Shown here: one piece after another, positions 1,733 to 62,803 of the stretch
Position numbering within the stretch: position 1 is the first letter of the stretch
Layout of the letters: each line of letters opens with the position of its first letter
Origin: Asterias rubens
Taxonomy: Eukaryota
NCBI RefSeq assembly: GCF_902459465.1
Contig: NC_047076.1
Location: 10,292,001 to 10,356,000 of the forward strand
DNA length: 64,000 nucleotides
Direction: 5' to 3'
Made by a program: the position numbers and the translations under genes
Notes under the pieces: model-generated
What the model saw: only the letters and a program-made list of their open reading frames with translations
Databases searched by the model: none
Told to the model about the DNA's origin: nothing

Positions 1733-4700
1733 CTGTGTACTGACATGATAGTAGTGAACAGTCTAGGTGAGCCAGGTATAACACTAGTAAAGATGAATTC
1801 AAACCGTGTATTATTACATCTGGTTAGAATGTACAATGCTTCAGCCTGCCCTCGCAGTTTCTAAGAAAGGTACGAACATCAAATAGAAACTTGATTGTTT
1901 TTTTAGATTTAAGATTAAATACAACTAAAGCATAAAAGGAAACAATTTAAAATGCTCTAGATTTAAAATGTTCCAGATTGCACGGTAGAGCAACGACCTA
2001 GTGGTCAAGCGTATCGGACTCAAGCTCTGGGCCCAATTTTCTGCTAAGCAGAAAAGAGCAGGGTACCAGTCACAAATTGTACGTGTGACTTGGTAGTTTG
2101 GCTGGTAACCCTTTTGTGGTAAGCCTAATTTTGTTAAGCTTAGCTACTTTTTGAGCTTATAACCAGCTCTATGTTATTGGGCTCTGGTGTTTCTGTTCAG
2201 CAGAGTGTGGGTTCGGGTCCCAGTCATGACACATGACACATGTGTCATTAAAGCGAGACCCTTTGTCCTTCAGATGGGATGTATCTGTATCTGTCGAATA
2301 CTGCAAAATACTCCTTGTTTTGTTTTAGGGGTGCTTTGACCAAATTGGGTATAGAATGCGTCAGGCCTGGAATGCATCCCAGTTTTGGAAAAATCCTAGT
2401 GAGAAAGCCTGGACAAAATGTTTGACTTACAGAATGTGCACTGCGTACTGTGATGTTGATGATGCATGTATATCCAACAGCTGCAATTAATACAATCACA
2501 ATTAAGAGTTTAGTACATGAATCCAACTATTATTATGGTACATACTTAACTCTTAAAGGCACTGTACACTATTGGTAATTGTCAAAGACCAGTATTCTCA
2601 CTTGGTGTATCTCAACATACGCATGAAATAACAAACCTGTAAAAGTTTGGACTCAATAGGTCGTTAAAGTTGCGAGAGAACAATGGAAGATCAACACCCT
2701 TGACGCACAAGTTGTGTGCTTTCAGATGCCTTGAATTCGAGAACTAAGCTGAGGTCTTGAATTCAATTCAAATATTTTATTGAGAAATTACTTCATTCTC
2801 AAAAACTATGTACCTTCAGAGGACGTCGTTTCTCACAATGGTTTATACCATCAACAGCTCTTCATTACACATTACAAAGTAAGTTTTATGCTGATTTATA
2901 TTTTGAGTAACTGCCGAATGTGTCAAATGCCTTTAAGTAGGGTTTAAAACTTTGCAAGGTTGGAGTACAATCAGGTGACACCATGTAGATAAATCTCTTT
3001 TCTGTAGTGGTTATTCTAAAATCGCTAGTTCTTCTCAGAACAACCAATACTCTAAAGTGATATGTACATGTAACAAACTCTACCTGCTAAGTAAATACAC
3101 ACATGGGGGTTGTTCAGACGCAGTACTAAAGTCGGTTTAACTCATGGTTCAACCCCGATCGAGTTCAACTCTGTGTGTCTAAACGATACTAAAGTTAGAC
3201 CGAATCGAGTTCAACCCACAAAAGATAGACCGTCTAGTGAGGGGTTTATCTTTAGACCGCTTTTTTTTTTTTTTTTTACACTGTGTGTGGACAGAATAAA
3301 AAAGACCACATCTGGTTTTACTCAAAACAGACGACCCATTGACCTCTGTAATCATTACGTTAACACACGGTGACCAATGAACAGGGCTACAGGGTCGCGT
3401 TTGCTTTGACCTCTTAAAACCAAAGCTGTCTGAAAGCAAGGGGAACTAACTACCTCAAAAGTTAAACTGGTCCGCTGTCTGAACATGCCCATGGTGTTAC
3501 CGCAAGCCAAATATACATACTTACATAAGTTAACTCTCGGTAGGGATTGAGAATGCCATATGAGCCTCAGGTTAGTCACAATCAGACGACCTGTAATTAA
3601 TAATTATAATAATAATAATTCATTTCATTTGGAATCATAACCAATCATAATCATAAACTACATGAGACCTTGCATCATAATCAATCATAATCAATCATAA
3701 TCAACCATAATCAATCATAATCAATCATAATCAACCATAATCAATCATAATCAATCATGATCAATCATATCAATCATTATCAATCATAAACATTATAATC
3801 AATCATAATCAATCATTACCAATGATAATCAATCATATAAATCATTATCAATCATAATAAATCATAAACATTCATAATCAATCATAATCATGAGACATTG
3901 AGATGTACCCTATGCGCTGATGAAGGGAAAATAAACAGTTGTACAAAGTAAACAGACATTTGTTCACCAGGGTTTTTAATTGTTCTGATGTTTCAACCTG
4001 TTTAACAACCTCTGGAAGACTGTTCCATAACTGAATTGCTGCATGTTGGAAAGAGCGGGAACCATACGACTTAGTTTTTGGGGAGTCAGGAGGGTAGTAT
4101 GTGATGATAGCCAATCAAGGCATTCAATGATAATGATGAATGAAAACTAAAGGTTTAAAATCTATTCTAGCCTGTATTGGTAGCCAGGGGTCGAAATTGC
4201 CACTATCCCGCTAATTTTTCCAGTTTGTGCCGTGACTCAAAATCTCATCAGGGCTACCATGGAGGAAAAATGGCTTCTACAAATTCTGGGTTGCTACATT
4301 TTGTACTACCCCCACTGACCACCATGAAGACACACTTAATTTGGAATGGGTGTGATAATATCTGAGAAGTATACCTTTGTCTCCATTATTCCCCTTTGTG
4401 TCTTCCACTGAATCAAGAAGATCAATTATCCTCTCTCCTGATCTCATATTCATCTGCCTGTAGAAGGAAAACAAACATTCAGTAGTCAACTGCGGTGAAC
4501 ATAAGAGTAACTATAAATATGAATAGTTAACTTGCGGGTACAACCATTTGTAAAATCTCTTTTGAGGGGGTGTTGGCTCTGAAAAGATATTTGTAGCAAT
4601 GTGGTGTTTGCATTCTGAAGTTTTAAAGTTGACAAAGATTACTTTCAAAAGATTATTTTCTTAGAGGTCCAAAGTTTTTCTGGTTTGACTAGATATTTGC

Positions 4701-7700
4701 TGGTGGTCTGCAACTTGTTACTGGTGTTTTCTTTGCATTATGTGCACAAATTATTTATTTGTTACTGTGTAGCCTGGCTATAATTTATGTGGTTTATCAA
4801 TCGGAGTACGACCACAGACGACCACACCATGTGAAAATCAGCTCCTTGAAAATCAGCTAAAATTACCTTAATATCTCCTCCATTTCCACCAATAACCTCC
4901 AAACGTGAGTATAAACAACTTGTCATCACTTTCACAAACCATCGAAGTTAAAGTCAAGCAGTATGCCCCCCAAAAAAGACAAAACTAAGTCGGCATCCAC
5001 TTCGATATCATCAGAGTCAACTTACGCGCCACACTCATCAGGTGATCACCCCTGCTCGCCCATTGCGTCATCAGACAATGACATAATCACCTTGCGTCGG
5101 GAACTCCGGTCAATGGCGTCTGATCTCAGCAGCAAACTGGACACAGTGATCAACAAACAAGATTCCATTTTGAAAAGAATTCAAACCCTGGAAACAAAAC
5201 AACGTGGAATGGAGGAGGCCATTGAGTTCTCGTCAAAGTCCATCGAGGAAATCCAAAAAAAACAAAAGAACTTATCCGATGGCGTTTCCACCCTGACGAC
5301 GCAGCTCAATACGGCCATTACAAAGATTAAACACCTGGAGGACGACACACTTAACCTGGAGCGCCATTCCCGAAGCTTCAACCTCCGGCTTGGGGGAATC
5401 CCGGAAAACCCAAAAGAACCCACCACCTTCCCCTACGACACAGTCAAGAAGATCCTGACGGAGCGGTACAACATGCCGGAAGCTGAAGTTGAGGCTGCAC
5501 ATCGTACAGGAAGACCCCCACAATCCCCATCGGACAAGCCCCGCCACATCATCGCGAGATTTCTGTATCGGTCTGAGCGCCAGGCTGTCCTGTCGAGAGC
5601 CAAACATAGTCTTGCAAACACCGGGATGTTTATCCTGCAAGACCTTCCTGCCGCTGACGTTGCCAAAAAAAGATCCCTCCGAGATGTAATGAAGAAAGCG
5701 TACGACGCCGGCAATCGCCCCGTCTTCAAGAATGGCGAGCTCTACATCCAGGGCAGGAAGTATACACCCACCCCATCCAGCTAAGATTGTTACAGTATAA
5801 TAGTGCCGTTTATCATTCATAAAACCTGAGTTGATTTTCCTGGTTCAAGTAAATTAAAGTGTTTCCATCATGATATATTTATGTATTTGTTTATGTTTGT
5901 CCGTGTGTACAGGAGTAAGGCATTGCTATACAGTATGTGCTTATTATCAAAACTAAACTAACCACGATGCTCCTATGATTCCAAGCCTAGATCCAGATAC
6001 AAACTTTCAAGCTCCTGTCATAAATTGTGATTACTATGATCAAGATCAATTCCTGAATGCATTTAACAAGAAAAAATGTTCAAATATGAAATTATTACAT
6101 ATAAATGCACGCAGCTTGCCCCGAAATATTACTTGTATTAGGAACTATGTAAACCTCTTGGAAAACACATTTTCAATTATTGGGATATCCGAATCATGGT
6201 TGAAAGATACTCAAGATCCGCTAGTCCAAATGCATAATTTTTCTATGGAAGGCTTCTGTAGACAAAATAAACGAGGTGGTGGGGTAGCACTATATATTAG
6301 AGATGACATCGTTTACAAAACTCGTAACGATATATCAGTGAACAATTCAGATATAGAATCATGCTTTATTGAGCTTGTTAATAATCACAATAGCAACGTG
6401 GTTATTGGAGTTGTGTATAAATCACCAAGCGCCCCGTTAAATAATTTTATAGAACTAATTAATGACATATTGGCTTGTGTTAACAATGAAAACAAAAAGT
6501 GTTATATTATGGGTGACTTTAATATTGATTTATTGCAGTATGATACACACAATGGTGTACGTAATTTTATGGACACTTTGCAATCCCAATCTTTTTATTC
6601 CACTATTAACAAACCAACTAGAATTACTGCTGACACTGCAACAGTAATTGACAATATCTTGACAAATGATTTCAACAACCACCATGCCGGCGTTTTAGTT
6701 ACTGACATAAGCGATCATTTACCGGTATTCCTAGTTACTGATAATCTTAGGGAAAACCCGCAGAACGAACGAAGAAACAGTAAGCGTGACTTTAGCAGTA
6801 ACCATATTCATAATTTTGTCGACGAACTTAACCAAATTGACTGGAGTTTTATAACATCATTGAATAATTTGCATGAAATATATGGTAACTTTCAGGAGCA
6901 TGTTGTTAAACTGTATGATAAACATTTCCCCTTGCAAGAGGTGAAACGCAGATATGATTCTTGTAAATCACCCTGGCTATCTGATGGCGTTTACAATTCA
7001 ATAAGGAGGAAAAACCACTTGTATAAAAAATTTCTAAGAAATCCTAATAACCAAAATAAATCCATCTATACTCTGTATAAAAATAAATTGAATGCTTTGA
7101 TTAAAATATCAAAGAAAAATTACTTAAACAAGAAATTTGAACAGGAAAATGGCAATATCAAAGGAACTTGGAAGCTTATAAATTCTTTGCTAAATAAGGG
7201 TAAGCCGAATTCCAACCCGTCTTATGTTGTTAAGGAAGACTGTGTTAAACTAGAGGATAACAAAGAAATTGCAGATGCATTCAATGAATACTTCGTTAGC
7301 GTCGGTGCGAAGCTTACACGTAATCTACCATTATGTAATACTTCGTGTGAGTCTTTTCTTGCAGGAAGATGTTCACACTCTATCTTTTTAACTCCAGTTA
7401 CGCAAGAAGAAATTGCAGATTCTCTCAACAAACTTACATGTAGCAAGGCTCCTGGTTTTGATGGGTTAAGTCCGTTTGTAATTAAACAGGCTAGGTACAT
7501 TCTTGCTAAACCACTTGCTGAAATCTTCAACAGGTCCTTATCTTCTGGTATTTTCCCCGATGCGTTAAAAATAGGTAAGGTTATACCAATACATAAAGGG
7601 GGTAATAAACATGATATTGGAAATTTTAGACCTATCTCAGTTTTGTCCACGTTCTCAAAGGTTTTTGAAAGGATAGTTTATAATAGACTAATATCATTCA

Positions 7701-9519
7701 TTAATAAAAATAGCATTCTTGCTGAGTCGCAGTTTGGCTTTAGGGAAAACCGATCTACAGAGTTAGCAACCTCATACGTAGTAAATAAACTACTCAAGGC
7801 CATAGACGATAAAACGTTTTCCGTTGGTATATTCTTGGACCTTTCAAAGGCTTTCGATACCGTAAACCATGACATTTTAATTTCTAAATTGGAACATTAT
7901 GGTGTGCGTGGAATAGCATTAGCCTGGTTTAAAAGTTATTTATCTAATAGAAAACAATTTGTATTGTTTAAGTCAACGCTGTCTAAAGAACAATATATTT
8001 CCTGTGGAGTTCCACAGGGCTCTGTGTTGGGTCCTCTGTTATTTATTATTTATATAAACGACATATGTAATACTTCTGATACAATATCCTTCTCTTTATT
8101 TGCAGATGACACAAGTTTAGTGTACAGTCATAGTAACGTAGATACAGCTGTTAGTCACCTTAATTTTGAACTTTTAAAAATAAGCACTTGGCTGTTGGCA
8201 AATAAACTATGTATTAATGTACTGAAATCAAATTATATAATATTTTGTCCGAGACAGCAGAAATATACTCAAACGGTTCCTTTAATATTAAATGGTGTTA
8301 ACTTGCAAAAAGTAAAAAGTACAAAATTTCTAGGCATTTATATTGACGAAAATCTTAACTGGAAGAGTCACGTTGATGTAGTGTCAAGCAAAATATCAAA
8401 AACCATCGGTATAATGAATCGTTTGAGGTTTTTCTTACCAAAGAATATCTTAATAACTCTTTACAACTCATTAGTCCTCCCATATTTAAATTACTCAATT
8501 CTCACTTGGGGTGGCTCTTCATCCTGTGATAAACTTCTTATTTTACAAAAACGAGCTGTTCGAATAATTTTCAACGCTCATTATCGGGACCATACCTCTC
8601 CTTTGTTTGCCGAACTGAAACTACTACACTTTAATGATCTCTATAACCTCAACCTTGGAAAATTCATGTACAGGTATATAAATAATTTGTTACCTTCCTG
8701 TTTTAGTTCATGTTTTACTCTCACTTCAGATGTGCATTCTTATAACACTAGAAGCAGCTCGAACAAGAACATTTATGTTAGTTTTAACAGAACGTCAATG
8801 TTTAAAAATGGCCTCGTTCAACGAGGTACACATTTTTGGAATAGTCTACCCACCCCTCTTAAAACATCATTAAGTTTATCTACATTCACCAAACAACTAA
8901 AAACACAACTGCTCCAATCATATTCTTAATCTGTAATGGAAAAATTGTCATTTAGCAATAGCTCAATTATGCTCCTATATGTCTGTCATTGTCCTTTTTT
9001 CGTTTGTCATTTGCCAGTCTGTGTTTGTCTGTCAAGGGTACGGGTACAAAAGCTTTGCTTCACCCTTTGCCCAATGTTGTTATGTGAATAATGTTTAAAC
9101 TAAGCTTCGTTAAGTTAATATTGTTATAAATGATTATTTCGTCTTTTAAAATATGTTGTTATAATAGTGTTAACTTAATGGTGTATGTATTATGTATTAT
9201 CATAACAATGTTGAAATAAATGTTCTATGATTGATTGATTGTTTTAGTTTAAATTGTATTTTTTGAATTTTAAGTTTTTAGACTCGTAAATCCAAATGAA
9301 TTTCATTGTATATGTGTAATGTGTGACAATAAAGCAGACTATGACTCAATTCGAGACAACTGTGTCTTTGTAAGGAATCCCAATCTATTAGTGTTACATT
9401 TGTCAAGAACAGTTTGTAATGACGTTTTTATGTACTTACGCTGTACTTATATCAAAGCGTACATCTCTGTCTTCCCATAATGCATCATACACAACGGGGG
9501 GTTTACTTGTTACAGCCAT
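1733..9519 (-). CDS. BBS5: Bardet-Biedl syndrome 5 protein (BBSome subunit), coding exons 1-5; the rest lies left of the window
   Basis: GT-AG exons 9519-9440, 4457-4375, 3590-3525, 2480-2431, 1860-1733 splice in frame to [136 protein letters not shown], recognisably BBS5 ([31 protein letters not shown]). Confidence 0.96.
1975..2335 (+). mobile_element. tRNA-derived SINE interrupted by a small TIR element (2031-2182)
   Basis: A-box/B-box-like head (TAGTGGTCAAGC...GGGTTCGGGTCCC) matching the copy at 52851; insertion with GCCCAAT/ATTGGGC ends and duplicated TCTGG. Confidence 0.65.
3600..3890. repeat. (ATAATCAATC)n-like degenerate micro/minisatellite
   Basis: Direct inspection; directly abuts the 3' end of the LINE fragment at 3890-4120. 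Confidence 0.9.
3890..4120 (-). mobile_element. 5'-truncated L2/CR1-group LINE 3' fragment
   Basis: Translates to [21 protein letters not shown]..., the typical C-terminal motif of L2/CR1-type ORF2, followed by a repeat tail. Confidence 0.7.
4963..5784 (+). CDS. LINE ORF1 protein (coiled coil + L1-ORF1/transposase-22-like RRM and CTD)
   Basis: 273 aa; heptad-rich N-terminal half, then [38 protein letters not shown] motifs of L1-type ORF1p. Confidence 0.85.
   Translation: MPPKKDKTKSASTSISSESTYAPHSSGDHPCSPIASSDNDIITLRRELRSMASDLSSKLDTVINKQDSILKRIQTLETKQRGMEEAIEFSSKSIEEIQKKQKNLSDGVSTLTTQLNTAITKIKHLEDDTLNLERHSRSFNLRLGGIPENPKEPTTFPYDTVKKILTERYNMPEAEVEAAHRTGRPPQSPSDKPRHIIARFLYRSERQAVLSRAKHSLANTGMFILQDLPAADVAKKRSLRDVMKKAYDAGNRPVFKNGELYIQGRKYTPTPSS
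5975..8929 (+). CDS. LINE ORF2: APE endonuclease + reverse transcriptase
   Basis: 984 aa uninterrupted; APE motifs [29 protein letters not shown]; RT motifs [29 protein letters not shown]; C-terminal HSYNTR...WNSLP. Confidence 0.95.
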   Translation: MIPSLDPDTNFQAPVINCDYYDQDQFLNAFNKKKCSNMKLLHINARSLPRNITCIRNYVNLLENTFSIIGISESWLKDTQDPLVQMHNFSMEGFCRQNKRGGGVALYIRDDIVYKTRNDISVNNSDIESCFIELVNNHNSNVVIGVVYKSPSAPLNNFIELINDILACVNNENKKCYIMGDFNIDLLQYDTHNGVRNFMDTLQSQSFYSTINKPTRITADTATVIDNILTNDFNNHHAGVLVTDISDHLPVFLVTDNLRENPQNERRNSKRDFSSNHIHNFVDELNQIDWSFITSLNNLHEIYGNFQEHVVKLYDKHFPLQEVKRRYDSCKSPWLSDGVYNSIRRKNHLYKKFLRNPNNQNKSIYTLYKNKLNALIKISKKNYLNKKFEQENGNIKGTWKLINSLLNKGKPNSNPSYVVKEDCVKLEDNKEIADAFNEYFVSVGAKLTRNLPLCNTSCESFLAGRCSHSIFLTPVTQEEIADSLNKLTCSKAPGFDGLSPFVIKQARYILAKPLAEIFNRSLSSGIFPDALKIGKVIPIHKGGNKHDIGNFRPISVLSTFSKVFERIVYNRLISFINKNSILAESQFGFRENRSTELATSYVVNKLLKAIDDKTFSVGIFLDLSKAFDTVNHDILISKLEHYGVRGIALAWFKSYLSNRKQFVLFKSTLSKEQYISCGVPQGSVLGPLLFIIYINDICNTSDTISFSLFADDTSLVYSHSNVDTAVSHLNFELLKISTWLLANKLCINVLKSNYIIFCPRQQKYTQTVPLILNGVNLQKVKSTKFLGIYIDENLNWKSHVDVVSSKISKTIGIMNRLRFFLPKNILITLYNSLVLPYLNYSILTWGGSSSCDKLLILQKRAVRIIFNAHYRDHTSPLFAELKLLHFNDLYNLNLGKFMYRYINNLLPSCFSSCFTLTSDVHSYNTRSSSNKNIYVSFNRTSMFKNGLVQRGTHFWNSLPTPLKTSLSLSTFTKQLKTQLLQSYS

Positions 9520-9575
9520 CAATCAATCAATCAAACAATTAATCAATCAATCAATCGATCAATCAATCAATCAAA
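9518..9575. repeat. (ATCA)n/(TTGA)n microsatellite in the BBS5 5' UTR, abutting the ATG
   Basis: Minus strand reads ...TTGATTGATTGATGGCTGTA. Confidence 0.85.
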
Positions 9576-9715
9576 CTCTGCTGCTTCAGGTTGCAATCAC
9601 AAAACTGTAGTTTAAAAAAGAAAAAAAAAGAAAGAAAAAACATTTGTTGGAATTAAAGATACTCGCAGTAGACTGATAGTGATAGTGATAGTTAAGCCTA
9701 AGTCACAATATGACA

Positions 9716-9905
9716 GCAGCCGATTTCACAAAACGCTAGGATTAATCCTATCTCGAGTTAGGACGAGTAACCTATCCTAACTTAGGGTGGGTTCAAATTG
9801 CTTTATGTTCGGATAGGCCTACGGAACTGAACTCCTAAGGATAGGCCTACGGAACTGAACTCCTAAGTCCTAGGATTAGAAAAGTTAGCAAGAGTTTGGA
9901 GAAGT
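9716..9905. mobile_element. MITE family J (GATTTCACAAA termini); copies 19932-20083 and 32806-33135
   Basis: TIR-like (C)GATTTCACAAA..../TTTGTGAAATC and shared AGGACGAG/CCTAAG core. Confidence 0.6.
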
Positions 9906-10902
9906 TGACAGCAGGACAATGCCATTTGTTGTTAGTCAGGTCAGGGTGTACTGTTATAGTGTGATTAAATTGTATTTGGAGTTGGAAATGAGACAAATAC
10001 CACAACCACATTTGATTAATCTTGCATTCTTGGTTGCGTTGATGCTGTTGAAGGTTGATTGAGTCGGGTTTGAGCAATCTGCAGTTGCAGACTCTATGTG
10101 CAAAATAATGCACAAATCCTTTAATGTGGTCACTATAAATACTGACAACTCACAACCCCTCATCACAACTCACGACAACAATTTTTAAATGCACTTTAAC
10201 AGATCATTTCATAAGTCAACCGTAAATATATGCACAAGAGTCATATATGCACCTAAATCACTTTCAAACTTCTACAAAAATTGTATTTTTAATTGTAAAA
10301 AAGTGTCTAGTTACAAACAGAAATATGCGCCATGTTGTCTTTCGATGTACTTGGACGATTCCACTGCACCACAGGGGTAATTTCTGAGGGCTCAGTTGAA
10401 TTTTTTTATTTTTGGTTTTAGCTGCTGTTTTTTTCTTTCCTGTAAGTAACTAAGTCGCCACTGGAAATGGAAGTTACTACACAAGGGGAGATTTAAGTAT
10501 AATATTGTTTTCAACTCCATGAAAGGCACATCAAATGGTAATAATCATCTTGCATGTACCACCCCTGCGGTGTAATGGAATCGTCCAAGTCCATTGAAAG
10601 ACAACAAGGCGGATTTTTGCTAACCATGCAGTCTGGCAGTGGCGTAAGACATTTTCATTGGGGGGGGGGGGGTAAGTGGGGGAAAAGATTAAAATTGGGG
10701 GGGGGGGGGCAAAGAAGTGCAAGAATTAGAATGTTAACTGATCTGAGTGAATAGTTGATACTTGAACCATTCTTTCTACCTCTCCTCATAAGGTAAGGTT
10801 CATTTTTATTTGCAACCTGATATGGTTGGATTCATTATAAAAAAAATACTAAAACTTACAAAATACATTACAAAAACTTTAAATCATTAAACTATGTATT
10901 TA

Positions 10903-11724
10903 TCGTAGCGTCATACGTTATCGACCCTCATATGTTTTCGAACCCTAACTTTGATTCCCGTTTACCGCGAGATTGTGCAAGCTGTACCGGTGACAGAAGC
11001 TCTGCTGTTTACTCACGGTCTGTATTTTCATCAGGCTTAATCATACTGAGAATAAAGTTTCCTGTCGTTGGTTATGCTCAAAACATTCATAAAATGATTG
11101 ATTTTTGGTACAAATCACAAGTGCATTATTTTGGCAACATTAAAATGAGTAAAAGAAACATCATCCAACCTCGAAAGTTCAAAACAAAATTACTATCTGC
11201 TAGATTGAGTTTCATTCTGCTTTAGTCACTAGATGGATCACGCGAGGTGGTTACTATTTGGGATTCTATGGTGTGCCAATATGGGGAAAAAATTAAAATA
11301 TTTTAAGTGAAAATGACAAACAATTTTTTTTTTTGATTTACTGCACTGTAATAAATTCCGATAAGCGTAATAAATATTAAGTCTACAGTAAAGAGAAAAT
11401 ATCATAGATTGATTTCAGATTATCTCCTGAAACCAAACATTACTGGTCTAAAATGGGGGAAAACGGATTGTTATGAAGTGTGTGTGCTTCAAGTGTAAGG
11501 GGGGTGGGGTGTTTTACTTTCATGCCTTGCGATATCTCTGGATTCTATAAATATAGTAGCCATATATAATGCCTTAGGACAAAAATGTAATTAAATTGTT
11601 AAGTAGTAATTGAATAATATTTTTGATTTATTTTGCACGCCATACTAGCTTCTGAATACTCAATAAAATACCAACCAATGAAAGGTGTGAAAACATATGA
11701 CGTTGCTCCAATGTCGTGCATGCA
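10903..11724 (+). mobile_element. Dispersed ~1-kb repeat, family A (copies 28262-29271 minus, 59462-60497 plus, fragment ~31115-31560 minus)
   Basis: High identity among copies, all starting A|TCGTAGCGTCATACGTTATCGACCCTC; no TIR, no ORF. Confidence 0.85.
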
Positions 11725-11812
11725 AACCGAAATAGTCGTCTCCCGTTACGGGAGACGATAGCTGGACGAAACCGAAATAGTTCTAGGAGTAACCAGCGCT
11801 GTGCTCGCTGGT

Positions 11813-12170: not shown

Positions 12171-12339
12171 ACAGAACGTGTGCCGCGACAACGAAGCAAC
12201 GGAAAGCAATAGTAAGTACCGAGTAGAAAATTGCAACATAACTCAACAAAAGGGAAATACAAGCATTATGAATGTATATTGAGTAGGATGGGGAAAGCTT
12301 TAGGTGTACAGTACACAGGAAACTTCAGTTCTGGCTGGC

Positions 12340-24586: not shown

Positions 24587-29889
<5,303 letters not shown>

Positions 29890-29892
<3 letters not shown>

Positions 29893-51300: not shown

Positions 51301-54300
51301 TGCGTCACTCAGTGACACTCAGAAATTATTACCCCTGGTCACTGGGCCATTTCTTTCATTCCTTAAGCCATCTCAGCTCCCTGGGGAGTACTATGTATAT
51401 GGCTTGTATTGTTAAAGGGTGGCTGCAGTGTTTTTTTTATTCATTTAAACGATTAAACATGACTTTTTAAACCTGAAATATTTTTTTCTATTTTTAATTA
51501 AATGCGCAAGTATTTTAAAAATGGTTTTCAAGAGATTAGGGGAACCCACCCCGCCCTCTAACAGGGAGCCTTCATTTGCATAAGCGTGACGTCATGTCGG
51601 TAACCCGAGCCGTCAGGCCCCCTGGCTGTGTGCATATAGAGACGTGTGCACTGTGTGGCCTGGTACCTAGGCGCGTGTAGTTAGGGACCAGACTCTTTTT
51701 GCCGACGATATGTTTGAATTCCCGACGTGACGTTGATGGTAGGGGGCGGTAACAATCCACAAAAGGGGGGGCATGACTTATTCGCTAATTACGCAAGTCA
51801 AATATGTCGGGAATAAACAAAACACATTCTATTGATGTTAATTTTAATTCACTGCAGCAACAAAATTGTATTCCAATGTGAATTGTCAGCTTTCAATTGG
51901 ACATCTTGGGTTTATAAATGAAAGCAAACATTTAGTTACGTTGTTTGATGGAAGTATCATTTGTTTGCGACACAATGTACATGTACATGAAGAGTGCATA
52001 CCTTATGGCCGGTACCTTCACAAGTGCTGTCTCGGCAAAGTATTTCATAAGAAGTCCTCTGTCGTCAGATTTCTAAACCCAAGAAAGAATAAATTAGTTT
52101 AACCACCAAAATGCGATAAGACCTTTCATATGTGTTAAATTTGCATAAGGGATTAAGAATACTATTTTGTTTTACCAACGTCCTCCGAAACTAACTGGTT
52201 AACCAAATTAACAATTTTACTCACCGATTTATTTTTGCCCATTTCATCGGCTGCATTCTTCAGTGCTTTACTGTTAGTCTTGACCACTGAGGGATCCATG
52301 AGTACCTGTCAAATATCAAAGGATTTTATGCCAAACTGAAATGTGCTTATAAGCTTGACTGAGGTTTTTGGTTAAATATTGCTCCAGTCAATTTCTCTTT
52401 GTTCTACCCTCACATTGTTTAAAATCCACCCAGTCAGTTTCCCTTGTAGTTATTTATTTGTTATGTTTCCCTTATTACTTCACAAAAAGAGATAAGAGGA
52501 GACAGAATTTTTAAGCAATTGGAACTGGATTGATTTACAAGAGTCCAATGGACAACAGTCTCAACATTGTTTGATCATGATCAAAAGAACATGTCCTAAT
52601 ATAAAGCTCGTACTTTCGGTAAGCAACAATTACCTAACAGTAAGCGTAAGGATTGTCCCTAGTGGTCTCACCATTTGTCTAGTCTTGGATGGAAGCTCCG
52701 TCATTACATCCTGCTTCAACCTTCGGATCATGATGCACTCTTCTAAAAGAAGTTGTAGTTCAGTCATATTGGAAGAGCCCGAGTAATCCCAACCCCATTG
52801 ATTCTAAACAGCCAAAACAAATCAAATATTTGCATAGATAAATTATCGATGGGTGTTGCGGCTGAGTGGATAAGAGCATCGAACTCAAGCTCTGGTGTTT
52901 CTGCTCAGCACAGTGTGGGTTTGAGTCCCGGTTGTGACACTTGTGTCCCTAAGCAAGACGCTTAAAGGAACACATTGCCTTGGATCGGTCGAGTTGGTCT
53001 ATAAAAAGCGTTTGTAACCGTTTGTTATAAAATGCATGTGGGTAGAAAGATGTTGTAAAAGTAGAATACAATGATCCACACAAACATGTCTCGAAATTGC
53101 ACGGTTTTCCTTTTACCTCGTCGACTAACACGGTCGGCCATTTATGGGAGTCAAATTTTTGACGCCCATAAACGGCCGACCGTGTTAGTTCGCACAGTAA
53201 AAGGAAAACCACGCAATTTCGAGGCAAACTTGTGTGGATCATTGTATTCTACTTTTAAAACATCTTTCCAACCATATGCATTTTTATAAAAAACGGTTAC
53301 AGACGCTTTTTATAGACCAACTCGTCCGATCCAAGGCAACGTGTTCCTTTAACTATAATTGCTTCTCTCCACCCAGGGTTAAATGGGTACCTGTGTGGGC
53401 AGAGATGGTTCTTGTGATTGATTTAGTTTTAGTAGGGCATATTTGTTGCACAGGCCGTATACTCCCCAGGGAGCTGAGATGGCTTAAGGAATGGATGAAT
53501 GGCCCTGTGACCAGGGGTAAGAAAGCACTTTAACCATGAAGCATTGTATTAAAGCGATTGTTATTATTATTACTATCATGCATGGAAGTCATTACTATTT
53601 CAATACTTAATTCTTTTGACACAAATAAGCATTTTGGGGACTTGATTAACTCCGAAAAAGGATAATGTCAATTAAGGACTATGAGGTTGTCCCACAAGGG
53701 TGTGGTTATATGTCACCCTTGTATAGTTTCTACCCTTACCTGAGTTGCATTGCAGTATCTCAGACCAAACTCATGAAATGATGGGAAGAGTCTGGGTGTT
53801 ACACCAAGGATCTGAGTGTAGAGTTCTGAAGGCCTTGATAAAGCAGGTGTACCTGATAGTAAGATGACACGGGGTGCTGTCTAAAGTACAGGAGATATCA
53901 ATGTGAAATACAATAATAATAGGAGTCTGGGTGCTACACCTAGGATCTGAGTGTAGAGTTCTGAAGGCCTTGATAAAGCAGGTGTACCTAATAATAAGAT
54001 GACACGGGGTGCTGTCTATAGTACAGGAGATATCAATGTCAAAAACAATATTAATAAGGGAATAAAAGGGTAGCGACGAGTTCTTCAACGTACGTTTAAA
54101 GCCGGCAGGGTCGACCGCCGTGTGAGGCTGGGGCCTTTATCGCACGTTAACGACCCTGCAAGGTTTTAAACCGAAGTTGAAGAACAAGTCACTACTCTTT
54201 TATTTCCATTCATAAATGCCCTTTTGTTAAAAAACGTAAAAAAATACAGTTATAGACACTTTAACAACTGAAAATTCAAGGTTTGAAATATTTTTCAAAA

Positions 54301-57300
54301 CTTTGTGAAGAATCTGTTCGAGGCGCGAGGGTTGTGTGTACGCGTGTGCGCTTAGATTACGCTCTGATAGCTATGATTTGCGCGTTCTGCGTGATAATCT
54401 TGCACGCCCGACACGCAGAAGCCAGCTCAGTGTGCTTAAACAGAGCTCCAGTGTGCATTAACAAAAGGTTTATGCACACCCATGGACACAATCTCCCCCC
54501 TGTTAAATTTAGTTAAATTTAGGGATAAAGAATGACATTTGCATTTTACCTTTACACTGAAGTGTGTTTGGAAGACACGATATTTGCAAGTTTTTAGTGT
54601 GTATACAAAAAGTTGTTGGTTTGAATCCCGCTCTAGTCAATTTTTGTTTGTATTAGTAATTTCCTTAATGGATAGAAACGTGCAAGATAATTACCTTCAT
54701 CAGGGGTATAGCTGCTTTCGTTCTCGCTGTTTTTATATTCTTCAAGAAATGGCTCTCATCCTGAATGGTTTATCAAAAGAAGAAACAAAGATTATTATGA
54801 ACATGTCACAAAAGAAATACATCTGATCTAGCTAATCTAAGTTTCATTGACGTTGCATTGACGGTATAATTATTACTTGACTAATAAAGATTTCAGTAAT
54901 GTATAAACTATGTGCAGTGCGCGGGCCTAAAGGCCAAGTTACACTGCAGCGATAACGATAACGATCATGATGCAAAGAGAACGCTTTCTATTGGTTGAAT
55001 TGCTCCACGCAGAATACGCCCACGCTCATTCAACCAATGGAGGGCATGCATTTTGATCATTCTCGTTTTCGTTACCAGGGCCTGTGTGACCGGGCCTTAA
55101 AGATGCTATGTCAGATTTTTGGACGATTTGACCTAAAATTTTGATTTAAAATTCAATTGGTATTTTGATGGGGGTCAAGAAAGTTACAAGCTTTCATTTA
55201 AGCCATTGCTCGAAAAAGTTCGCCAATTATTAGTAGCAGTGAAATAAAGTGCTCAAAATTTGTTTTTGTCGGGATCCCGACAATATATCACGTGACCAAT
55301 TATTATGTGTTTTATAAGAATCGTTTTAAATTTTTGTCATGGTTCCTGACCATTAAAAGTAAAAGTTAAACATTTTTTCGTTAGAGTGGGTGATACTCTT
55401 TGAAATACCATTCACTCAAAAAAATATATTGTTTAATGTTTGGGGCCAAAAATCTTACAAAGCATCTTTAAGCTTGAGCCGTAGCCCAAGCCGAGGTTTG
55501 AGAAAGGTCCCAGGACTAGCTACATTATCAACCAAATAACTTACCATAATGATGACCTTGAATCTGAATTGTTTGAGTTCTTGTGCTTTACGATGCATCA
55601 AATCATAGCTGAGAATATTCACCTTGCCTGATGTTGCATTATGTTTACTGTTTACTACAACATTGATATCATCAGGGCTTAATGAAGGAATCCAGGTTTG
55701 GAAAGCCTACAGTTTAAAAGAAGAAAACAAACATTTGACTAAACTAACTCTCAATCTTAGAGACAGTAACAGACTCTTAAGCAATAATGTTTGGCATTGA
55801 AATGTTCATCAATCATATTATTAAGTAGTATTTGAAACTTTGCATTGTGGAAATACGATATAGAAAGGTTTGTGGTAACACCATGTAATGACTATCTCTA
55901 ATGAGTTGGGGTGGTTCTGAAAAGAACCGTTGGTTTCAACTCTAGTTGAAACCAACGGTTCTTTTCAGAACCACCCCAAGTCATTAGAGATAGTCATTAC
56001 ATGGTGCTACCGCAAACCTTTCTAAATCATATTATTGCTACTTCTGAAATAAAAACTACTGGGGAAATTGAAATTATCATTCTAATTTTCAGGCAAATAC
56101 TGACGGATTGACTAAGGGCTTTCGAGAAAACACTATACATGTACAGACAGATTTGCTATGGAGTATTCAGCGAAACCTTGAAAGACATTTTGGAGTTTTT
56201 TTGCATCATAATTTATTACAATTTCTTTCTCCACTGGGAGTACAGTGAGATAATAGAAGAAGGTAATGATGGGTAAAGTTGCACACATTAAGGATACAAG
56301 AGGGCAGTGAGGTGTAACGTTGGTCCACATTAAGGTTTAGAAAAGGGTAGCAAGGAATAAATTTGGTGACCAGTGAGGGGTAATGATGGGTAAAGTTGTA
56401 CCTCGGCCCATGAATATCTAACAGAGGATGGAGAGACGACCAGGACCGGCCACTCTGCACGATAGTAGCATGCTACACAGATTGCTTGTAGTGTCTTGCC
56501 TAATCCCATCTCATCTGCAATAAGAACTCGTCCCTCTCTGCTGATCGCAAAGCTTGAATAAAAGAAAAATTGATATGTAGCAAAACAACACAAGAATGTC
56601 AGAACAGGGCATAGAGCAAGTTCGAGTGCGAACATTTAGTTGACCCCTGATTGACCACTGACTAGCTTCCCAGTACATCTCAGAACTACTTAAAGTTTAC
56701 ACTCCGTCAAGGAATCTTTGATCAAGTTCCATGCTACTCCTCAATAAACCCAAGTCTCGACACTCCTGGGGGTGACAGATCTTTTTCTTCAGCTGCGCAG
56801 CGCATCTGGAACACTACACCAGTTAATCTTAGATCTTGTCTTTGTACCACAAAATGCAAATATCTTCTCAAAGGTTTTCAGTGACTAATACAGTAGAGTT
56901 TGTTTTTCTTCTGTTTGTTTTTGGTTTTACTGCACCTTGAACACCCAGCAGGGTGGATACCTGTGCTTTACAAACCTGTATTATTATTATTAACAATTCT
57001 TATTCAAGATGCTTAAAGGCAAGGTGCCCCAATCCTGTTAGAACAAATTCGATATGCAGGAAAAAAAAACACTGAGGGGAAAAAAAACATGCTGTTAGAT
57101 AAATCAAGCATAAATAACATAAAATGCTTACTTTACACCCTCGCGCTGAAAACCCATGAGTGCGTTGACTAGTGTACTATCCACACACTTAAGATTGGCT
57201 TCAGGTATAACACGGTTGCCTTCCTTGCCATGTCGCTGCCTACGGAATGCAGTGCATATGGTCTTAGGTAGAGGCTCTATCTCAACGGATGGTTGAAGGG

Positions 57301-58807
57301 GCTTCACTGCTTCAACTGCATAAAAAGATAACAAGTTTGTTCATTTCACTTCATTTCCTTTCATTTATTCTGATTGTGAAGAATAATAACACTAAGTTCT
57401 TATATCCTCTGCTCAATTTAATATGGAGAGTCACAGTATCTGTTGAGTTATTCACCCTACAAATAAAAACACCCCTAGGTAAGGGTAGAATCTATACATG
57501 TTGGCTGAAACAAATGATATACTTGTTTTGTTTCCAGTTTGTTTCCAGACTTTATGTACAGTCCACACAGAGCACAAAAACCATGATTTTTTTTATTTCG
57601 CAAAATTCAGCATTCACTGATCAATTTGTTGCATACTTACTCAGAGTATCATACTCAGACAATGCAAAAGACCATTTCTTTTCAACAGCATCTGAAATAA
57701 AATTCAATCAAATCAAACAATTACTAAGAAAATATAAAGCTAAAAAAGGTTTTGGAGCTTGTGTAGAATTTATTTCTCTAATGCTGTGCATCTGCTGAAA
57801 CGGAGTTATGTTATAATAATACTTACAATCTGCAGGGTAGTACTTCATCACGATGGACACATCAAAGATATTGTTTATGTTTTAATTAAAGGCACTGACC
57901 ACTATTGGTAACAAAACTTACCATAACTTTTACTTGGCAATTCTTTGAAAACTTCAATCAGCTTAGCGTGATAGCCAACATTCACTACAAATCTTTCCCT
58001 GGATATCAGCACGCAGACTCCAACTGTATTACCACCGCTGCTACCCTGCAAGTTCATCCCACGTTCATTTCCAAAAGTGGACTTATTTCCTTTTATGTTC
58101 TGATAGACGTCTTGACGCTTACTGGAAGCTTTCGGTGGGTCGTTGAAAGCCTGAAATCCAGACTTGTGAGAATTGGAGTGTGCATTCCCTTTCAAGAGCT
58201 GACCAGATAGGCTAGCCTGGCCACCAGATGCAGACTTAGGTTTCGTGGAATAAAAACTTGAAATTGTCTTTTGTCTGTTGAGAGAATTACTTGAGTTTGA
58301 TGATGACTCTCCATGCCCACCTATAACATGGCCCTCTGTTGTTGAGCTTGAATTTGAAACGGTTGATTTGCAATGAGCGCCATGTGCAGTATCAAGAATA
58401 GATTTCTCTTTGGCCGCCCCACCAGTCTGGTGTACACTACTGGCAATGGCACTGGTCTGCAATGTGCTGGGCTTTGTGATGCTTGATCTACTGGCAATGG
58501 CACTGGTCTGCAATGTGCTGGGCTTTGTGATGCTTGATGTCCATTTCTTAGCTGAGTCAATAGATGTTGAACTAGACCCACTAGGCCTATCCACATTACT
58601 TTTTCTCCCCGTAGTTACGTGTTGTTGGGTGTTGCCATATTTGGACGACGTGCCAACTTCCTGCCGAACATTAGAAGATGAGTTTCCAACCTGTTTGACA
58701 CCTTGATTATTGCCTTGGTTACGCTGAGCTCGAAGGAGAATTGCCCTCTTTTTATTTTCCTCCATTCGTCTTTTCTGTTCCTCTGTTAGACCTCCTGTCG
58801 TTGCCAT
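45378..58807 (-). CDS. SMARCAL1: SMARCAL1/HARP annealing helicase (SNF2 family), single HARP domain
   Basis: Exons 58807-57922, 57691-57641, 57315-57132, 56552-56402, 55706-55545, 54760-54695, 53880-53740, 52803-52672, 52305-52225, 52072-52002, 51202-51103, 47039-46857, 46529-46429, 46146-46059, 45836-45378; N-terminal RPA-binding [63 protein letters not shown]. Confidence 0.96.
47139..47510. repeat. 22-bp perfect tandem repeat, ~17 copies
   Basis: (TTAAAACAAGCTAAATGAAGAA)n. Confidence 0.95.
47520..50900 (-). mobile_element. Decayed single-ORF LINE, Rex1/Babar-like, in a SMARCAL1 intron, sense to the gene
   Basis: Frameshifted pieces 50619-50185 ([26 protein letters not shown]), 50164-49391 (GDFN, SDH), 49323-48115 ([21 protein letters not shown]), 48105-47746; ends approximate. 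Confidence 0.85.
52851..53575 (+). mobile_element. tRNA-derived SINE split by a Kolobok-like MITE
   Basis: GGCTGAGTGGATAAGAGC...GGGTTTGAGTCCC head, CCACCCAGGGTTAAATGGGTACC core, (TTA)n tail. Confidence 0.75.
52966..53348. mobile_element. TTAA-flanked Kolobok-like MITE, family F (partial copy 63770-64000)
   Basis: TTAA|AGGAACACATTGCCTTGGATCGG...CCGATCCAAGGCAACGTGTTCCT|TTAA. Confidence 0.85.
53790..54050 (-). repeat. 135-bp tandem duplication of a SMARCAL1 acceptor and exon 5' portion
   Basis: ATATCTCCTGTACT(A/T)TAG|ACAGCACCCCGTGTCATCTT... occurs at 54015 and 53880. Confidence 0.9.
54930..55096. mobile_element. PIF/Harbinger-like MITE
   Basis: Ends AGGCCAAGTTACAC / GTGTGACCGGGCCT with flanking TAA. 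Confidence 0.5.
55101..55467. mobile_element. TTAA-flanked Kolobok-like MITE, family G
   Basis: TTAA|AGATGCT ... AGCATCT|TTAA. Confidence 0.7.
55861..56024. repeat. 164-bp near-perfect palindrome (collapsed TA-flanked MITE)
   Basis: ~80-nt arms TAGAAAGGTTTGTGGTAACACCATG...TTTCAACT / AGTTGAAA...CATGGTGCTACCGCAAACCTTTCTA with 2-nt loop. Confidence 0.9.
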
Positions 58808-59286
58808 GGTGTTGGAAGACACTGTGCTTTAATTTAATCCAATATCTGTAGGGTTGAGACAATGATTATCAATGACACGACGTGAATGACACTCTTCTTA
58901 ATCTTAGTCTTTAAAATAGCAAAGCAAAGCACTAACCCCAAATTGATAATGATTGTATTACTCATGTACAGACATGACTGACACAAAACAGTGACAGACG
59001 TGACAAGTATACAGTCATAGTTGCAATTTAACATAAACCCTTCTCCCGACGGCGTGGAGGGTTACATTTGCAACTAGTAGTAGTACAGTCACTAGTCAGC
59101 AGTCAGTCCATAGTAGTCAGACATGTCAGATTGACTAGAACTTAGAAGTAGAACTTCTCAAACAATTCCACATTTTTGTTAAGTCACAAGGACAAATGGA
59201 CATTAAACATGTTAAACCATAGTTTTAAATAGCCCATGTAACCCCATGTTATGTTGGGACTCCTCGTTGGCACTGTCGTCCAGTAC

Positions 59287-59414
59287 CTAGCCCACCTTGT
59301 TGAGTGGCTCCGCTTTTAACATCGGTCTCATCACTGTCGCCATTACAGTAATGGCGACAGTGATGAGACCGATGTTAAAAGCGGAGCCATTAACAGCTCA
59401 ACAAGGTGGGCTAG
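59287..59414. repeat. 128-bp hairpin (60-bp stem, 1-nt loop, one 7-nt bulge) between SMARCAL1 and PSMC3IP
   Basis: CTAGCCCACCTTGTTGAG-TGGCTCCGC...GCCATTAC|A|GTAATGGC...GCGGAGCCA-ttaacag-CTCAACAAGGTGGGCTAG. Confidence 0.9.
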
Positions 59415-60659
59415 TCAGTGCTAGTCCAGCCAGTACCAAGCCGGCAGGGCCAAAGGTACTATCGTAGCGTCATACGTTATCGACCCTCATATATGTTTTC
59501 GGTCCCCAACTTTGATTCCCGTTTACCGCGAGATAGTGCAAGCTGCATCGGTGACAGAAGCTGTGCAGTTTACTCACGGCCTGTATTTTCATCAGGCTTA
59601 ATCATGCTGAGAATAAAGTTTCCTGTCGCTGGTTATGCTAAAATATTTATAAAATGATTGATTTTTGGTACAAATCTCTAGTGCATTATTATGCCAACAT
59701 TCAAATGAGTCAAAGAAACATCATCCAACCTCGAAAGTTCAAAACAAAATTACTATCTGCAAGATTGAGTTTCATTCTGTTTTAGTCACTAGATGGATCA
59801 CGTGAGGTGGTTACTATTTTGGATTCTTTGGTGTGCCAATATTAAAATATTTTAAGTGAAAATGACAACAACAAAATGTTTTGATTAACTGCATACTGTA
59901 ATAAATTCTTGTAAGCGTAAAAAATATTACGTCTATATTAAAGAGAATATATCATAGATTGGTTTCTTATCTCCTGAAACTAAACATAACTGCTGGTCTA
60001 AAATGGGGAAAACGGATTGTTATGAAGTGTGTGTGTTTTAAGGGGGGTGGGGTGTTTTACTACCATGCCTTATTTATGATATCTCTCGATTCTAATATAG
60101 TAGCCATAGTAATGCCTTGGGACAAAAATGTAATTAAATTTGTCAAGTAGTAATTGAATAATATGTTTTATTTATTTTGCACGCCATACTAGCTTCGAAA
60201 TATTCAATAAAATACCAACCAATGAAAGGTGTGAAAACATATGACGTTGCTCCAATGTCGACGTGCATGCATAAGCACTGTTAATGGCGGACTGTCTCTC
60301 GCAACGTAAAACCAAAACTTTAAAAACTTCAACACACCATGAAGTGTAAGTGTTATTATTAAAAAATTGGATAGATGATTTGAAAAAAAACATTCAGTTT
60401 TTGATTGTGAACAATTTTCCTGTTACGTTAGTGTTAACTGACCCTTATTTATTACTATTTATCCTACCTACTGAAAACACATGACACCAGGATATTATTA
60501 CGGAATACGTGGCTTAAAAAATAAAATTAACAATTATGTTACCTGTCACTGTCAGTGATCACACTGTGATGCTATGCAGCAATTGAATAATGGTCTTACA
60601 CCATTTGCTTACCATATGTTTATTCCAGGAACGTTGAGTAAATGACAGCGAAAAAGATT

Positions 60660-61030
60660 CATGGGCGCCGCCATCTTTAATCTGGATGAACTCTGGGTAA
60701 AATGGCCCTACAGATTTGAACCAATCACAATGGACGTTCTAACTTCAAACCAATGAAATTGTCTCTTATAAATGAACTCGGCAGTGCAATCTGCGCGCGC
60801 AACTAGAGCGGGGCAGTCCAAAAAAATAGTCGCTGTCGTTTTTGTGCATGTTGTTGTCAATGTCGTCCGTTCACGGAGTTTTTCCCCAATTATTCACATT
60901 CGAGCTGCGGAGTACAACGTGACTTTTGTAATGTCTTTGTAATGCCTGAAACTTTCGCAAGGAGAGTGAGTCTACTTTATTCGATTCCAGCATTGTTTTG
61001 AAGTTGTGTATGACCGGAAGTAACACAGTA
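60660..61030. promoter_or_regulatory. Probable PSMC3IP promoter: YY1-like GCCGCCATCTT, CCAAT boxes, ETS CCGGAAGT (61014-61021)
   Basis: Motifs read directly, within 400 nt of the ATG at 61039. Confidence 0.5.
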
Positions 61031-61038
61031 ACACTGGA

Positions 61039-62803
61039 ATGAGCAAGTCAAAAGATGGAGATGGTAAGTTTTCTTTTTAAAGTTTTATTTATTAATTTAC
61101 ACAATCAATAATAAGCAAAATTAATGTACCGCCATGGTCACTGATGATTGTGTACATGATGTAGATTTATGTAGGGGATCTTGCCAGTGTGACAGCAGTT
61201 TCTGTCCTCCCGAGAGTCTGTCCCATTTACACATGATACATAATTTTTAAAATTTAGTACTAAAATTACAGAAAACTGTGCTGTGTAACTGTAAAAGTTT
61301 CCTTCCTCCATGGTAAAACAAACAAGTCTGTCCTGATAAATAGTGATAGCGCCCTCTTTTGTTTGAATCAATAGACAATTATTAATTGTACTTATTTTGT
61401 AGTGGTCGTAGGCTGGTGTGGTGTGGGACACTATATACAGAATATACAGGAAGGCAGTGGTGACAGTTTTCCCTATTAATTTAGGCTAGACATTGGTTTG
61501 GATAACTTTCCGTATGGCGCCACCACCTTTTCACTCATTTTTACAAAAAGGGATATCTCATTGAGGTAAATTAGATACTATATTATTTCATATCGAATGA
61601 AAAAGTGGTGGCGCCATACGGAAACTTTTCCATTGGTTTAAAAGTCCAGCTCCATAAATTGGTCCAATCATAGAGTAAGGACAGGTCTGTCCTTACTCTA
61701 TGGTCCAATCTACTCCGTAAACCTTGGCCCCTGCAGCATTCATTGTTATCAGTATCACTTTCTTTCACTTTGTTGTAAATTTAATGACAATACCGTTCTG
61801 CAACGATCTGCATCATGAAGTGGGAACTTTTAAAAATATCTCAACGATCTTGACAACTTGACATTTTGCTTTAGTTGATCGAGGGGTTACTTTTTTGTTA
61901 ATTCCAGAATTAAGAAGTTTCCTGAAGAAATTCTAAAAATCTACCCCATGGCAATAGAATATAAAGTAGCCCCATAAATCGGTCCAATCCACTCCGTATC
62001 CTTGGCCCCAGCACCACTGATATCAAAACCTTTCGCTTCCTTGAAAAACCATCTGCAACGTTCTGCATCATGAAACTTACCCATCTAATACTTCAGAAGT
62101 TGCAGATAGCACTACACTTGGAATTGTTCAAATAGGTATCACAGATTTTGAGTAAAAATCAAGTGAATTTTGCGTGTGAATTTTCTCAACTAACGCTCTT
62201 TTACCGCTAATGCCGATATGCCGATTGTCCCCCGACCATGCGCAGATTTTTTTCCCAGGACAAACTTGTAGAACCATCTGCACACGTTCGTCCTGGGAAG
62301 AAAAGATACTCAATCCGCGCTTCGTGTACAAACATATGGACACGCGTCTGGGAACCACAAAGAATAGTTCCCAGACGCGTGTCCGTATATTTGTACATGA
62401 AGCGCGGATTGGTTATCTTTTCTTCCCAGGACGAACGTGTGCAGATGGTTCTACAAATTTGTCCTGGGAAAAAAATCTGCGCACAGTCGGGGGACAATCG
62501 ACATATCGGTAAAAGAGTGTTAGTTGAGAAAATTCACACGCAAAATTCACTTGATTGGACCGATTTATGGGGCTAAATATAAAGTAGACAAATTCTCAAG
62601 GACAAGAGAATACACATGGTGTTACCGCAAACCAAATATTATACCTCACAATGCAATGCCTCTAATCCCTAATGTAATACTGACTAAATAAGTTTTTGTT
62701 TTATAAAGTTGGGGTTGCGATAGAAGACTACCTCAATCGTGCGAACAGACCTTACAGTGCCATTGATGTATTCAACAACCTACACAAAGAGTTTGGAAAA
62801 ACA
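61039..62803 (+). CDS. PSMC3IP: Homologous-pairing protein 2 (HOP2/TBPIP), first two coding exons; continues right of the window
   Basis: Exons 61039-61063 and 62709-62803 give MSKSKDGDVGVAIEDYLNRANRPYSAIDVFNNLHKEFGKT, matching the HOP2 winged-helix motif YL...NRPYS..DVF.NL. Confidence 0.88.
61967..62575. mobile_element. Family I element with 9-bp TSD and internal ~200-bp foldback
   Basis: TIR TAGCCCCATAAATCGGTCCAAT / ATTGGACCGATTTATGGGGCTA; AATATAAAG on both flanks; inner arms ~62157-62356 and ~62368-62556. Confidence 0.8.

Follow-up and report, generated by a model that had tools for sequence, protein, structure and literature searches.

Three kinds of described systems come closest to the gene cluster reported here, one of them being gene pairs with bidirectional promoters. 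Vertebrate chromosome regions derived from the two vertebrate genome duplications (2R) and showing reciprocal gene loss, the 2R paralogons, are said to have been described by Dehal and Boore (2005), Simakov (2020) and Nakatani (2021), and conserved metazoan microsynteny blocks reportedly by Irimia et al. (2012) and Simakov et al. (2013). The Hox-linked 2q/7p/12q/17q paralogon carries IGFBP genes, and the classic regulatory blocks consist of a developmental gene together with bystander genes harbouring its enhancers. In a 64,000-nucleotide stretch of the genome of the starfish Asterias rubens (contig C16, positions 10292001-10356000, called the window below) we found the genes BBS5, RETREG, RPL37A, ZNF622, SMARCAL1 and PSMC3IP in this order. 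The five genes from RETREG to PSMC3IP probably represent a real and old neighbourhood, which pre-dated the vertebrate duplications and whose members are split across three mammalian chromosomes.

Like the 2R paralogons, this locus is a single invertebrate region matching several vertebrate regions, each of which retains one RETREG1-3 paralogue plus complementary single-copy neighbours. A scan of the 417.6-Mb genome with the RHD_RETREG1-3 profile gave a single RETREG gene in this unduplicated outgroup, and the vertebrate paralogues are located on different chromosomes, each with different block members, the position of RETREG2 being our assumption. As in the metazoan microsynteny blocks, unrelated genes keep tight adjacency, order and orientation over very deep divergence: the same arrangement was found in Acanthaster, for the RETREG-RPL37A pair in Strongylocentrotus purpuratus, and for all five genes on the ENA contig ERZ25069296 ctg21248. 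Unlike the regulatory blocks, the members of the RETREG block are all housekeeping or broadly expressed genes. IGFBP2 and IGFBP5 are beside RPL37A in cattle (PMC9172108), which ties the 2q35 segment to the classical Hox-linked paralogon. The RETREG block differs from that paralogon because only three of the expected four regions were identified, the third RETREG region is 5p15.1 instead of 7p or 12q, and the starfish Hox cluster is on contig C3 whereas the block is on C16.

All six genes were detected through Pfam matches on exon open reading frames (ORFs), and matches to solved structures confirmed ZNF622, BBS5 and PSMC3IP. The linkage within 61 kb, as claimed in the initial annotation, is real. 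The genes are encoded on alternating strands, starting with BBS5 on the minus strand and RETREG on the plus strand; the conserved core comprises RETREG (+), RPL37A (-), ZNF622 (+), SMARCAL1 (-) and PSMC3IP (+). Three head-to-head pairs are formed, with spacers of 6.6 kb (BBS5/RETREG), 10.7 kb (RPL37A/ZNF622) and about 2 kb (SMARCAL1/PSMC3IP), and the tail-to-tail spacers are 2.2 kb (RETREG/RPL37A) and 1.4 kb (ZNF622/SMARCAL1). BBS5 and PSMC3IP extend past the window edges. Through six-frame profile scans of the whole assembly (150 contigs), one locus each was found for the BBL5, TBPIP, HARP, Ribosomal_L37ae and RHD_RETREG families, so in these five families there are no starfish paralogues to confuse orthology.

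The initial annotation had called for mapping in other sea stars and sea urchin, and there RETREG-RPL37A-ZNF622 is retained in Acanthaster and RETREG-RPL37A in S. purpuratus. In Acanthaster planci, RETREG (+), RPL37A (-) and ZNF622 (+) are followed by a minus-strand gene of 977 residues, all within 14 kb, and the locus showed clear exon-by-exon similarity with the Asterias locus. The 977-residue gene occupies the SMARCAL1 position and is presumably SMARCAL1; the Acanthaster stretch examined stops short of the PSMC3IP position. In S. purpuratus, RPL37A (-) is the adjacent gene, 4.8 kb downstream of RETREG (+). A single RETREG locus was found in each echinoderm examined.

The most complete counterpart was the ENA contig ERZ25069296 ctg21248, in which gamma-tubulin, RETREG, RPL37A, ZNF622, SMARCAL1 and PSMC3IP are contained within about 32 kb, and the order and relative orientation of the five core genes are exactly as in Asterias. 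The whole 48.7-kb contig reads PRPF40-like, PSMC3IP, SMARCAL1, ZNF622, RPL37A, RETREG, gamma-tubulin and PARP-like. In the RETREG tree, its RETREG gene clustered with two other ENA sequences (support 100/99), and this group falls outside the asteroid, echinoid and holothuroid groups. The tree is composed of echinoderm and ENA sequences only and is effectively unrooted, so the contig could stem from a brittle star, a crinoid, a hemichordate or a still more remote lineage. Across the divergence over which order and orientation persist, the RETREG proteins are only 25-47% identical.

The upstream side of RETREG gave a different picture. BBS5, which the initial annotation had counted as a block member, adjoins RETREG only in Asterias among the loci examined; in Acanthaster, S. 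purpuratus, Diadema and ERZ25069296, the 10 kb upstream of RETREG contained no BBS5 exon, and the 10 kb around RETREG were likewise without BBS5 in Diadema, Holothuria, Lytechinus variegatus and two further ENA contigs. Its place is taken by a CCHC/RS-rich gene in Acanthaster, IPK in S. purpuratus, a Fringe-like gene in Diadema, and gamma-tubulin in ERZ25069296, the last as in mammals. The upstream side of RETREG is thus evidently prone to rearrangement. One could suppose that a six-gene block including BBS5 was ancestral and that BBS5 was lost from beside RETREG repeatedly in other lineages. BBS5 does stand head-to-head with RETREG in Asterias, human BBS5 is presumably at 2q31, on the same arm as SMARCAL1, RPL37A and RETREG2, and in Asterias BBS5 is followed on its left by a shugoshin gene, human SGO2 being likewise taken to be on 2q. 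Nevertheless, we regard repeated loss of BBS5 as quite improbable, because the gamma-tubulin arrangement is shared with mammals and is the more parsimonious ancestral state. The ancestral upstream, head-to-head neighbour of RETREG was most likely gamma-tubulin rather than BBS5, and BBS5 probably came in later from another part of the same linkage group.

Published mammalian gene lists contain the pairs ZNF622-RETREG1, PSMC3IP-RETREG3 and SMARCAL1-RPL37A, which the initial annotation had put forward. The order FBXL7-MARCH11-ZNF622-FAM134B-MYO10-BASP1 is reported for human 5p and cattle (PMC11476383, PMC4319771), XRCC5-MARCH4-SMARCAL1-RPL37A-IGFBP2-IGFBP5 for the cattle counterpart of human 2q35 (PMC9172108), and COASY-MLX-PSMC3IP-RETREG3-TUBG1/2-PLEKHH3 for cattle and goat (PMC12075139, PMC11213886), while human 17q21 carries the same genes as this last list (PMC4657880). 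If the ancestral order is assumed to be TUBG-RETREG-RPL37A-ZNF622-SMARCAL1-PSMC3IP, all three mammalian orders follow by deletions alone. Deletion of the three middle genes (RPL37A, ZNF622 and SMARCAL1) gives the 17q21 order PSMC3IP-RETREG3-TUBG1, deletion of RPL37A places RETREG1 beside ZNF622, and deletion of ZNF622 places RPL37A beside SMARCAL1. The human strand orientations would also fit this model. Since gamma-tubulin was absent from the original hypothesis, its adjacency to RETREG on ERZ25069296 is an independent match to mammals. MARCH4 (beside SMARCAL1) and MARCH11 (beside ZNF622) are presumably paralogues, and IGFBP2/5 together with IGFBP4 would be another family with paralogues in these segments.

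We therefore propose, as the best explanation of these orders, that the block was in place before the two vertebrate genome duplications and that each duplicated copy would then have lost a different subset of genes. One copy would have kept TUBG, RETREG3 and PSMC3IP (human 17q21), another RETREG1 and ZNF622 (5p15.1), and another RPL37A and SMARCAL1 (2q35), RETREG2 having since been displaced along that arm. The vertebrate RETREG genes would then be 2R duplicates of a single gene. In Asterias, the block may have survived largely through passive retention in a compact, slowly rearranging genome, and a rearrangement of the upstream side may have placed BBS5 beside RETREG. The initial annotation had already suggested a pre-duplication block with complementary thinning; the other genomes and the mammalian lists bear this out for the five-gene core but not for BBS5.

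The correspondence with the human regions extends to the whole of C16, which also carries gamma-tubulin (6.65 Mb), COASY, DCAKD (these two both CoaE-domain genes), ATG9 and PRPF40. We take human COASY and DCAKD to be at 17q21 and ATG9A at 2q35. Of six single- or dual-copy markers selected in advance, five were located on C16, which makes up 3.5% of the genome (P about 3e-7); the Ku genes were the exception. For both MyTH4 and RINGv, one locus out of several is on C16, and these loci were not identified as MYO10 or MARCH4/11; the C16 RINGv gene is 1.8 Mb from the block.

This correspondence raises the odds of finding near neighbours, and the block might then be a coincidence atop chromosome-scale conservation, in which genes of a shared ancestral linkage group came close by chance in the starfish. 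For this reason the within-chromosome shuffle is the proper null model. The chance figures were obtained by analytic estimate and simulation with whole-genome and within-chromosome shuffles, assuming about 760 genes on C16. With shuffling within the chromosome, the probability of two of the six immediate human RETREG neighbours lying within four genes was about 0.0016, and with RPL37A and SMARCAL1 there as well about 1e-4, so the linkage exceeds the within-chromosome expectation in the shuffled-order test that had been asked for. In addition, three other genomes (Acanthaster, S. purpuratus and ERZ25069296) independently show the same order and orientation, and gamma-tubulin, which was not predicted, is beside RETREG on ERZ25069296 and matches the mammalian RETREG3 neighbour. 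Chance proximity is accordingly a very remote explanation.

Several observations weigh against an ancient block thinned in vertebrates. RPL37A was missing from the 10 kb around RETREG in Diadema, Lytechinus variegatus and Holothuria, and also in two further ENA contigs. The RETREG span is 15-34 kb in Diadema, Lytechinus variegatus and Holothuria versus 6 kb in Asterias, and since genes are 3-5 times longer in those loci, the missing RPL37A is weak evidence of breakage only. RETREG2, which we take to be in 2q35, would be about 2.7 Mb from RPL37A; a literature search for RETREG2 neighbours found nothing. The five-sequence RETREG profile, full-length Acanthaster and Diadema core-domain searches returned echinoderms or the query only, and the query with the last RETREG exon gave seven matches, none of the named ones outside echinoderms. 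With the RETREG tree confined to echinoderm and ENA sequences, one-to-three orthology is assumed. At its C-terminus, the gamma-tubulin of ERZ25069296 shares 69% identity with the Asterias protein over 72 residues, and from such sequence distances the lineage of the contig appears to be fast-evolving or an outgroup. Finally, neither Ku gene is on C16, and the Hox cluster, in a check separate from the six markers, was on C3 and not on C16.

The placement of the block on the Hox chromosome was considered and rejected on this ground, and the linkage group of the block is thus separate from Hox in the starfish lineage. What is presumably the Hox cluster comprises about twelve homeoboxes spread over 0.5 Mb at C3:1576272-2089678.

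The gamma-tubulin distance can be compared with that of Asterias gamma-tubulin to its best-matching vertebrate chain, about 88% identity over 64 residues as counted from the alignment. Similarly, one ZNF622 exon showed 57% identity between ERZ25069296 and Asterias and about 65%, also counted, between Asterias and human. The conserved proteins of ERZ25069296 are about equally distant from Asterias and from the best-matching vertebrate chains. We might speculate that the contig comes from outside the deuterostomes, in which case the gene run would be bilaterian or older, though we think this doubtful. If true, the order and orientation of the TUBG-to-PSMC3IP run would have persisted for well over 550 million years, and such long retention of a housekeeping run would most plausibly need active constraint, for example shared divergent promoters.

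Such constraint might also be considered for the block in general, where the three head-to-head pairs would share bidirectional promoters or interleaved regulatory elements and selection would resist breaks. The block resembles bidirectional-promoter gene pairs in having three head-to-head pairs, with spacers of 1-4 kb. The strict strand alternation, which yields three divergent pairs, agrees with this, as do the short spacers in compact genomes (RPL37A/ZNF622 about 1.2 kb in Acanthaster, SMARCAL1/PSMC3IP about 2.3 kb in ERZ25069296), the persistence of the RETREG3-TUBG1 adjacency in mammals, and an order and orientation that outlast the divergence of the RETREG proteins. However, vertebrates put RPL37A/ZNF622 and SMARCAL1/PSMC3IP on separate chromosomes, so those pairings are dispensable. 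As only one head-to-head pair out of three and neither tail-to-tail pair stayed together in vertebrates, an obligate link is hard to maintain, and the RETREG upstream partner is different in every species examined. The RPL37A/ZNF622 spacer in Asterias has been swollen to 10.7 kb by repeats, and RNA depth puts the transcripts of SMARCAL1 and PSMC3IP about 2 kb apart at their 5' ends, more than in a classic bidirectional promoter (<1 kb). A functional block is therefore an unlikely explanation compared with passive retention, and the shared regulation suggested in the initial annotation is speculation.

Our full-text literature search found no prior description of the block or of the synteny and evolution of the RETREG family. 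The phenomenon itself is known from many such blocks, and no new mechanism is revealed. The neighbourhood provides a compact illustration of the reciprocal gene loss that followed the vertebrate genome duplications, in which one ancestral order would yield PSMC3IP-RETREG3-TUBG1, ZNF622-RETREG1 and SMARCAL1-RPL37A by deletion alone. It supports treating the three RETREG endoplasmic reticulum (ER)-phagy receptors as 2R duplicates of one ancestral gene, links the 5p15.1 segment to the 2q35 and 17q21 regions, and may serve as a small marker block when chromosome segments of newly assembled deuterostome genomes are assigned.

RETREG, a FAM134-type ER-phagy receptor gene, is complete in the window (16102-22366, plus strand; Pfam RHD_RETREG1-3 at 16087-16329). 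Its eight coding exons with GT-AG boundaries (16102-16328, 17566-17672, 18201-18228, 18893-19019, 19587-19671, 20246-20377, 20642-20863 and 21681-22366) exactly reproduce the 537-residue NCBI protein "reticulophagy regulator 3-like [Asterias rubens]". RETREG/FAM134 receptors are characterized by an N-terminal reticulon-homology domain and a disordered tail ending in an LC3-interacting motif (PMC9126229). In the starfish gene, the reticulon-homology domain (Pfam PF24456) spans four exons, and the C-terminal region encodes a putative acidic F-x-x-L/I motif at 22226-22240, similar to an LC3-interacting region. The starfish protein fits the receptor architecture.

RPL37A, encoding the ribosomal protein eL43, is located at 24590-27184 on the minus strand (Pfam Ribosomal_L37ae at 27050-27184, 4.7e-21), and its coding exons are 27050-27184, 24851-24934 and 24590-24676, plus a first exon of one codon that was not located. 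The exons showed 96% identity with Acanthaster and 91% with S. purpuratus.

ZNF622 encodes a REI1-type 60S maturation factor (37857-43950, plus strand; zf-C2H2_jaz and zf-C2H2_2 at 37854-38207). Its exons are near 37857-38180, 38540-38746, 39596-39740, 40340-40513, 40866-41036, 43005-43148 and 43807-43950, and they match the Acanthaster ZNF622 gene one by one in tblastn. The paired N-terminal C2H2 fingers are of the REI1 type. Human ZNF622 was the top solved-structure match with 113 bits, versus at most 66 for yeast REI1/REH1, and it was also the best solved-structure match of the second exon (87 bits). One intron holds a tandem array of 73-base units at 40967-42770 (plus strand), repeating the end of the exon before it; over 20 consecutive ORFs of the array match a single Acanthaster ZNF622 exon (L012:21653-21721).

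SMARCAL1, the annealing helicase with HARP and SNF2 domains, occupies 45378-58849 on the minus strand, with the start codon at 58807 and the stop at 45378. Successive minus-strand exons encode HARP (57905-58828), the SNF2 ATPase (SNF2-rel_dom, 56333-56635) and Helicase_C (46746-47138), in the domain order of SMARCAL1. Exon 1 is expressed and the RNA coverage extends to about 58849; thirteen exon ORFs match SMARCAL1 on ERZ25069296. An intron of the Asterias gene contains a broken long interspersed nuclear element (LINE) in three frames (47749-50622, minus strand), with RVT_1 on 48118-49449 (2e-22) and a weak endonuclease match on 49394-50203. In ERZ25069296, a SMARCAL1 intron contains a nested antisense single-exon gene for a rhodopsin-type G-protein-coupled receptor of 386 residues (L018:8266-9426), and no counterpart receptor gene was found at that SMARCAL1 position in Asterias.

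PSMC3IP (HOP2/TBPIP) is present with its 5' part at 60902-64000 on the plus strand (Pfam TBPIP at 62684-62815). Exon 1, with the start codon at 61039, ends at 61063, exon 2 is at 62709-62804, and a spliced RNA joint with GT-AG boundaries connects 61063 to 62709. The later exons are at C16:10366046-10370101, 10-14 kb right of the window, past an intron of more than 11 kb; one exon matched HOP2 in the solved-structure search. An ORF of 593 residues with an immunoglobulin V-set domain was found in this intron of more than 11 kb, on the same strand (C16:10360985-10362763). The RNA and contig signal is very deep at 61507-61673 and 62843-63000, where it greatly exceeds that of the neighbouring genes and has many loose ends; these stretches are probably highly expressed or high-copy repeats in PSMC3IP introns.

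The 5' two-thirds of BBS5 are at 1-9522 on the minus strand (Pfam BBL5 at 4280-4510 and 3358-3603), with exons near 9439-9520 (containing the start codon), 4367-4459, 3556-3600 and 1726-1890. The whole-genome BBL5 scan located the four 3' exons at C16:10289039-10291370, reaching 2,961 bases beyond the left edge of the window, and a 3' exon matched BBS5 of the BBSome among solved structures. Intron 1 holds a non-long-terminal-repeat (LINE) retrotransposon at 4915-8926 on the plus strand, composed of an ORF1-like frame (4915-5781) and an uninterrupted ORF2 of 990 residues (5957-8926) with RVT_1 (1.5e-36) and Exo_endo_phos matches.

The head-to-head spacer between BBS5 and RETREG (9523-16101) includes repeat-derived ORFs at 12364-12846 that recur at 62131-62573; the ORF at 12367-12846 is without a Pfam match. 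The repeat-rich RPL37A/ZNF622 spacer (27185-37856) is much occupied by an interspersed repeat family, seen at 30500-31500 and 33583-34439, which has more than 100 genomic copies, some in inverted pairs. In the SMARCAL1/PSMC3IP spacer (58850-60838), where the two start codons are 2,232 bases apart, repeat-like transcribed pieces were detected.

Outside the window, the shugoshin gene left of BBS5 encodes a Shugoshin_C domain, and a RECK gene with FZ_RECK, EGF1_RECK and Kazal domains is located right of PSMC3IP. Fringe-like genes are also present on C16 but at least 1 Mb from the block: three single-exon copies in tandem at C16:13214009-13222606, and more copies at 1.07, 11.30 and 11.51 Mb. RINGv matches at C30:102074-102211 and C16:12165889-12166026 had equal scores and open-frame lengths, and C30, which is a small contig, may represent part of C16 as an uncollapsed haplotype.

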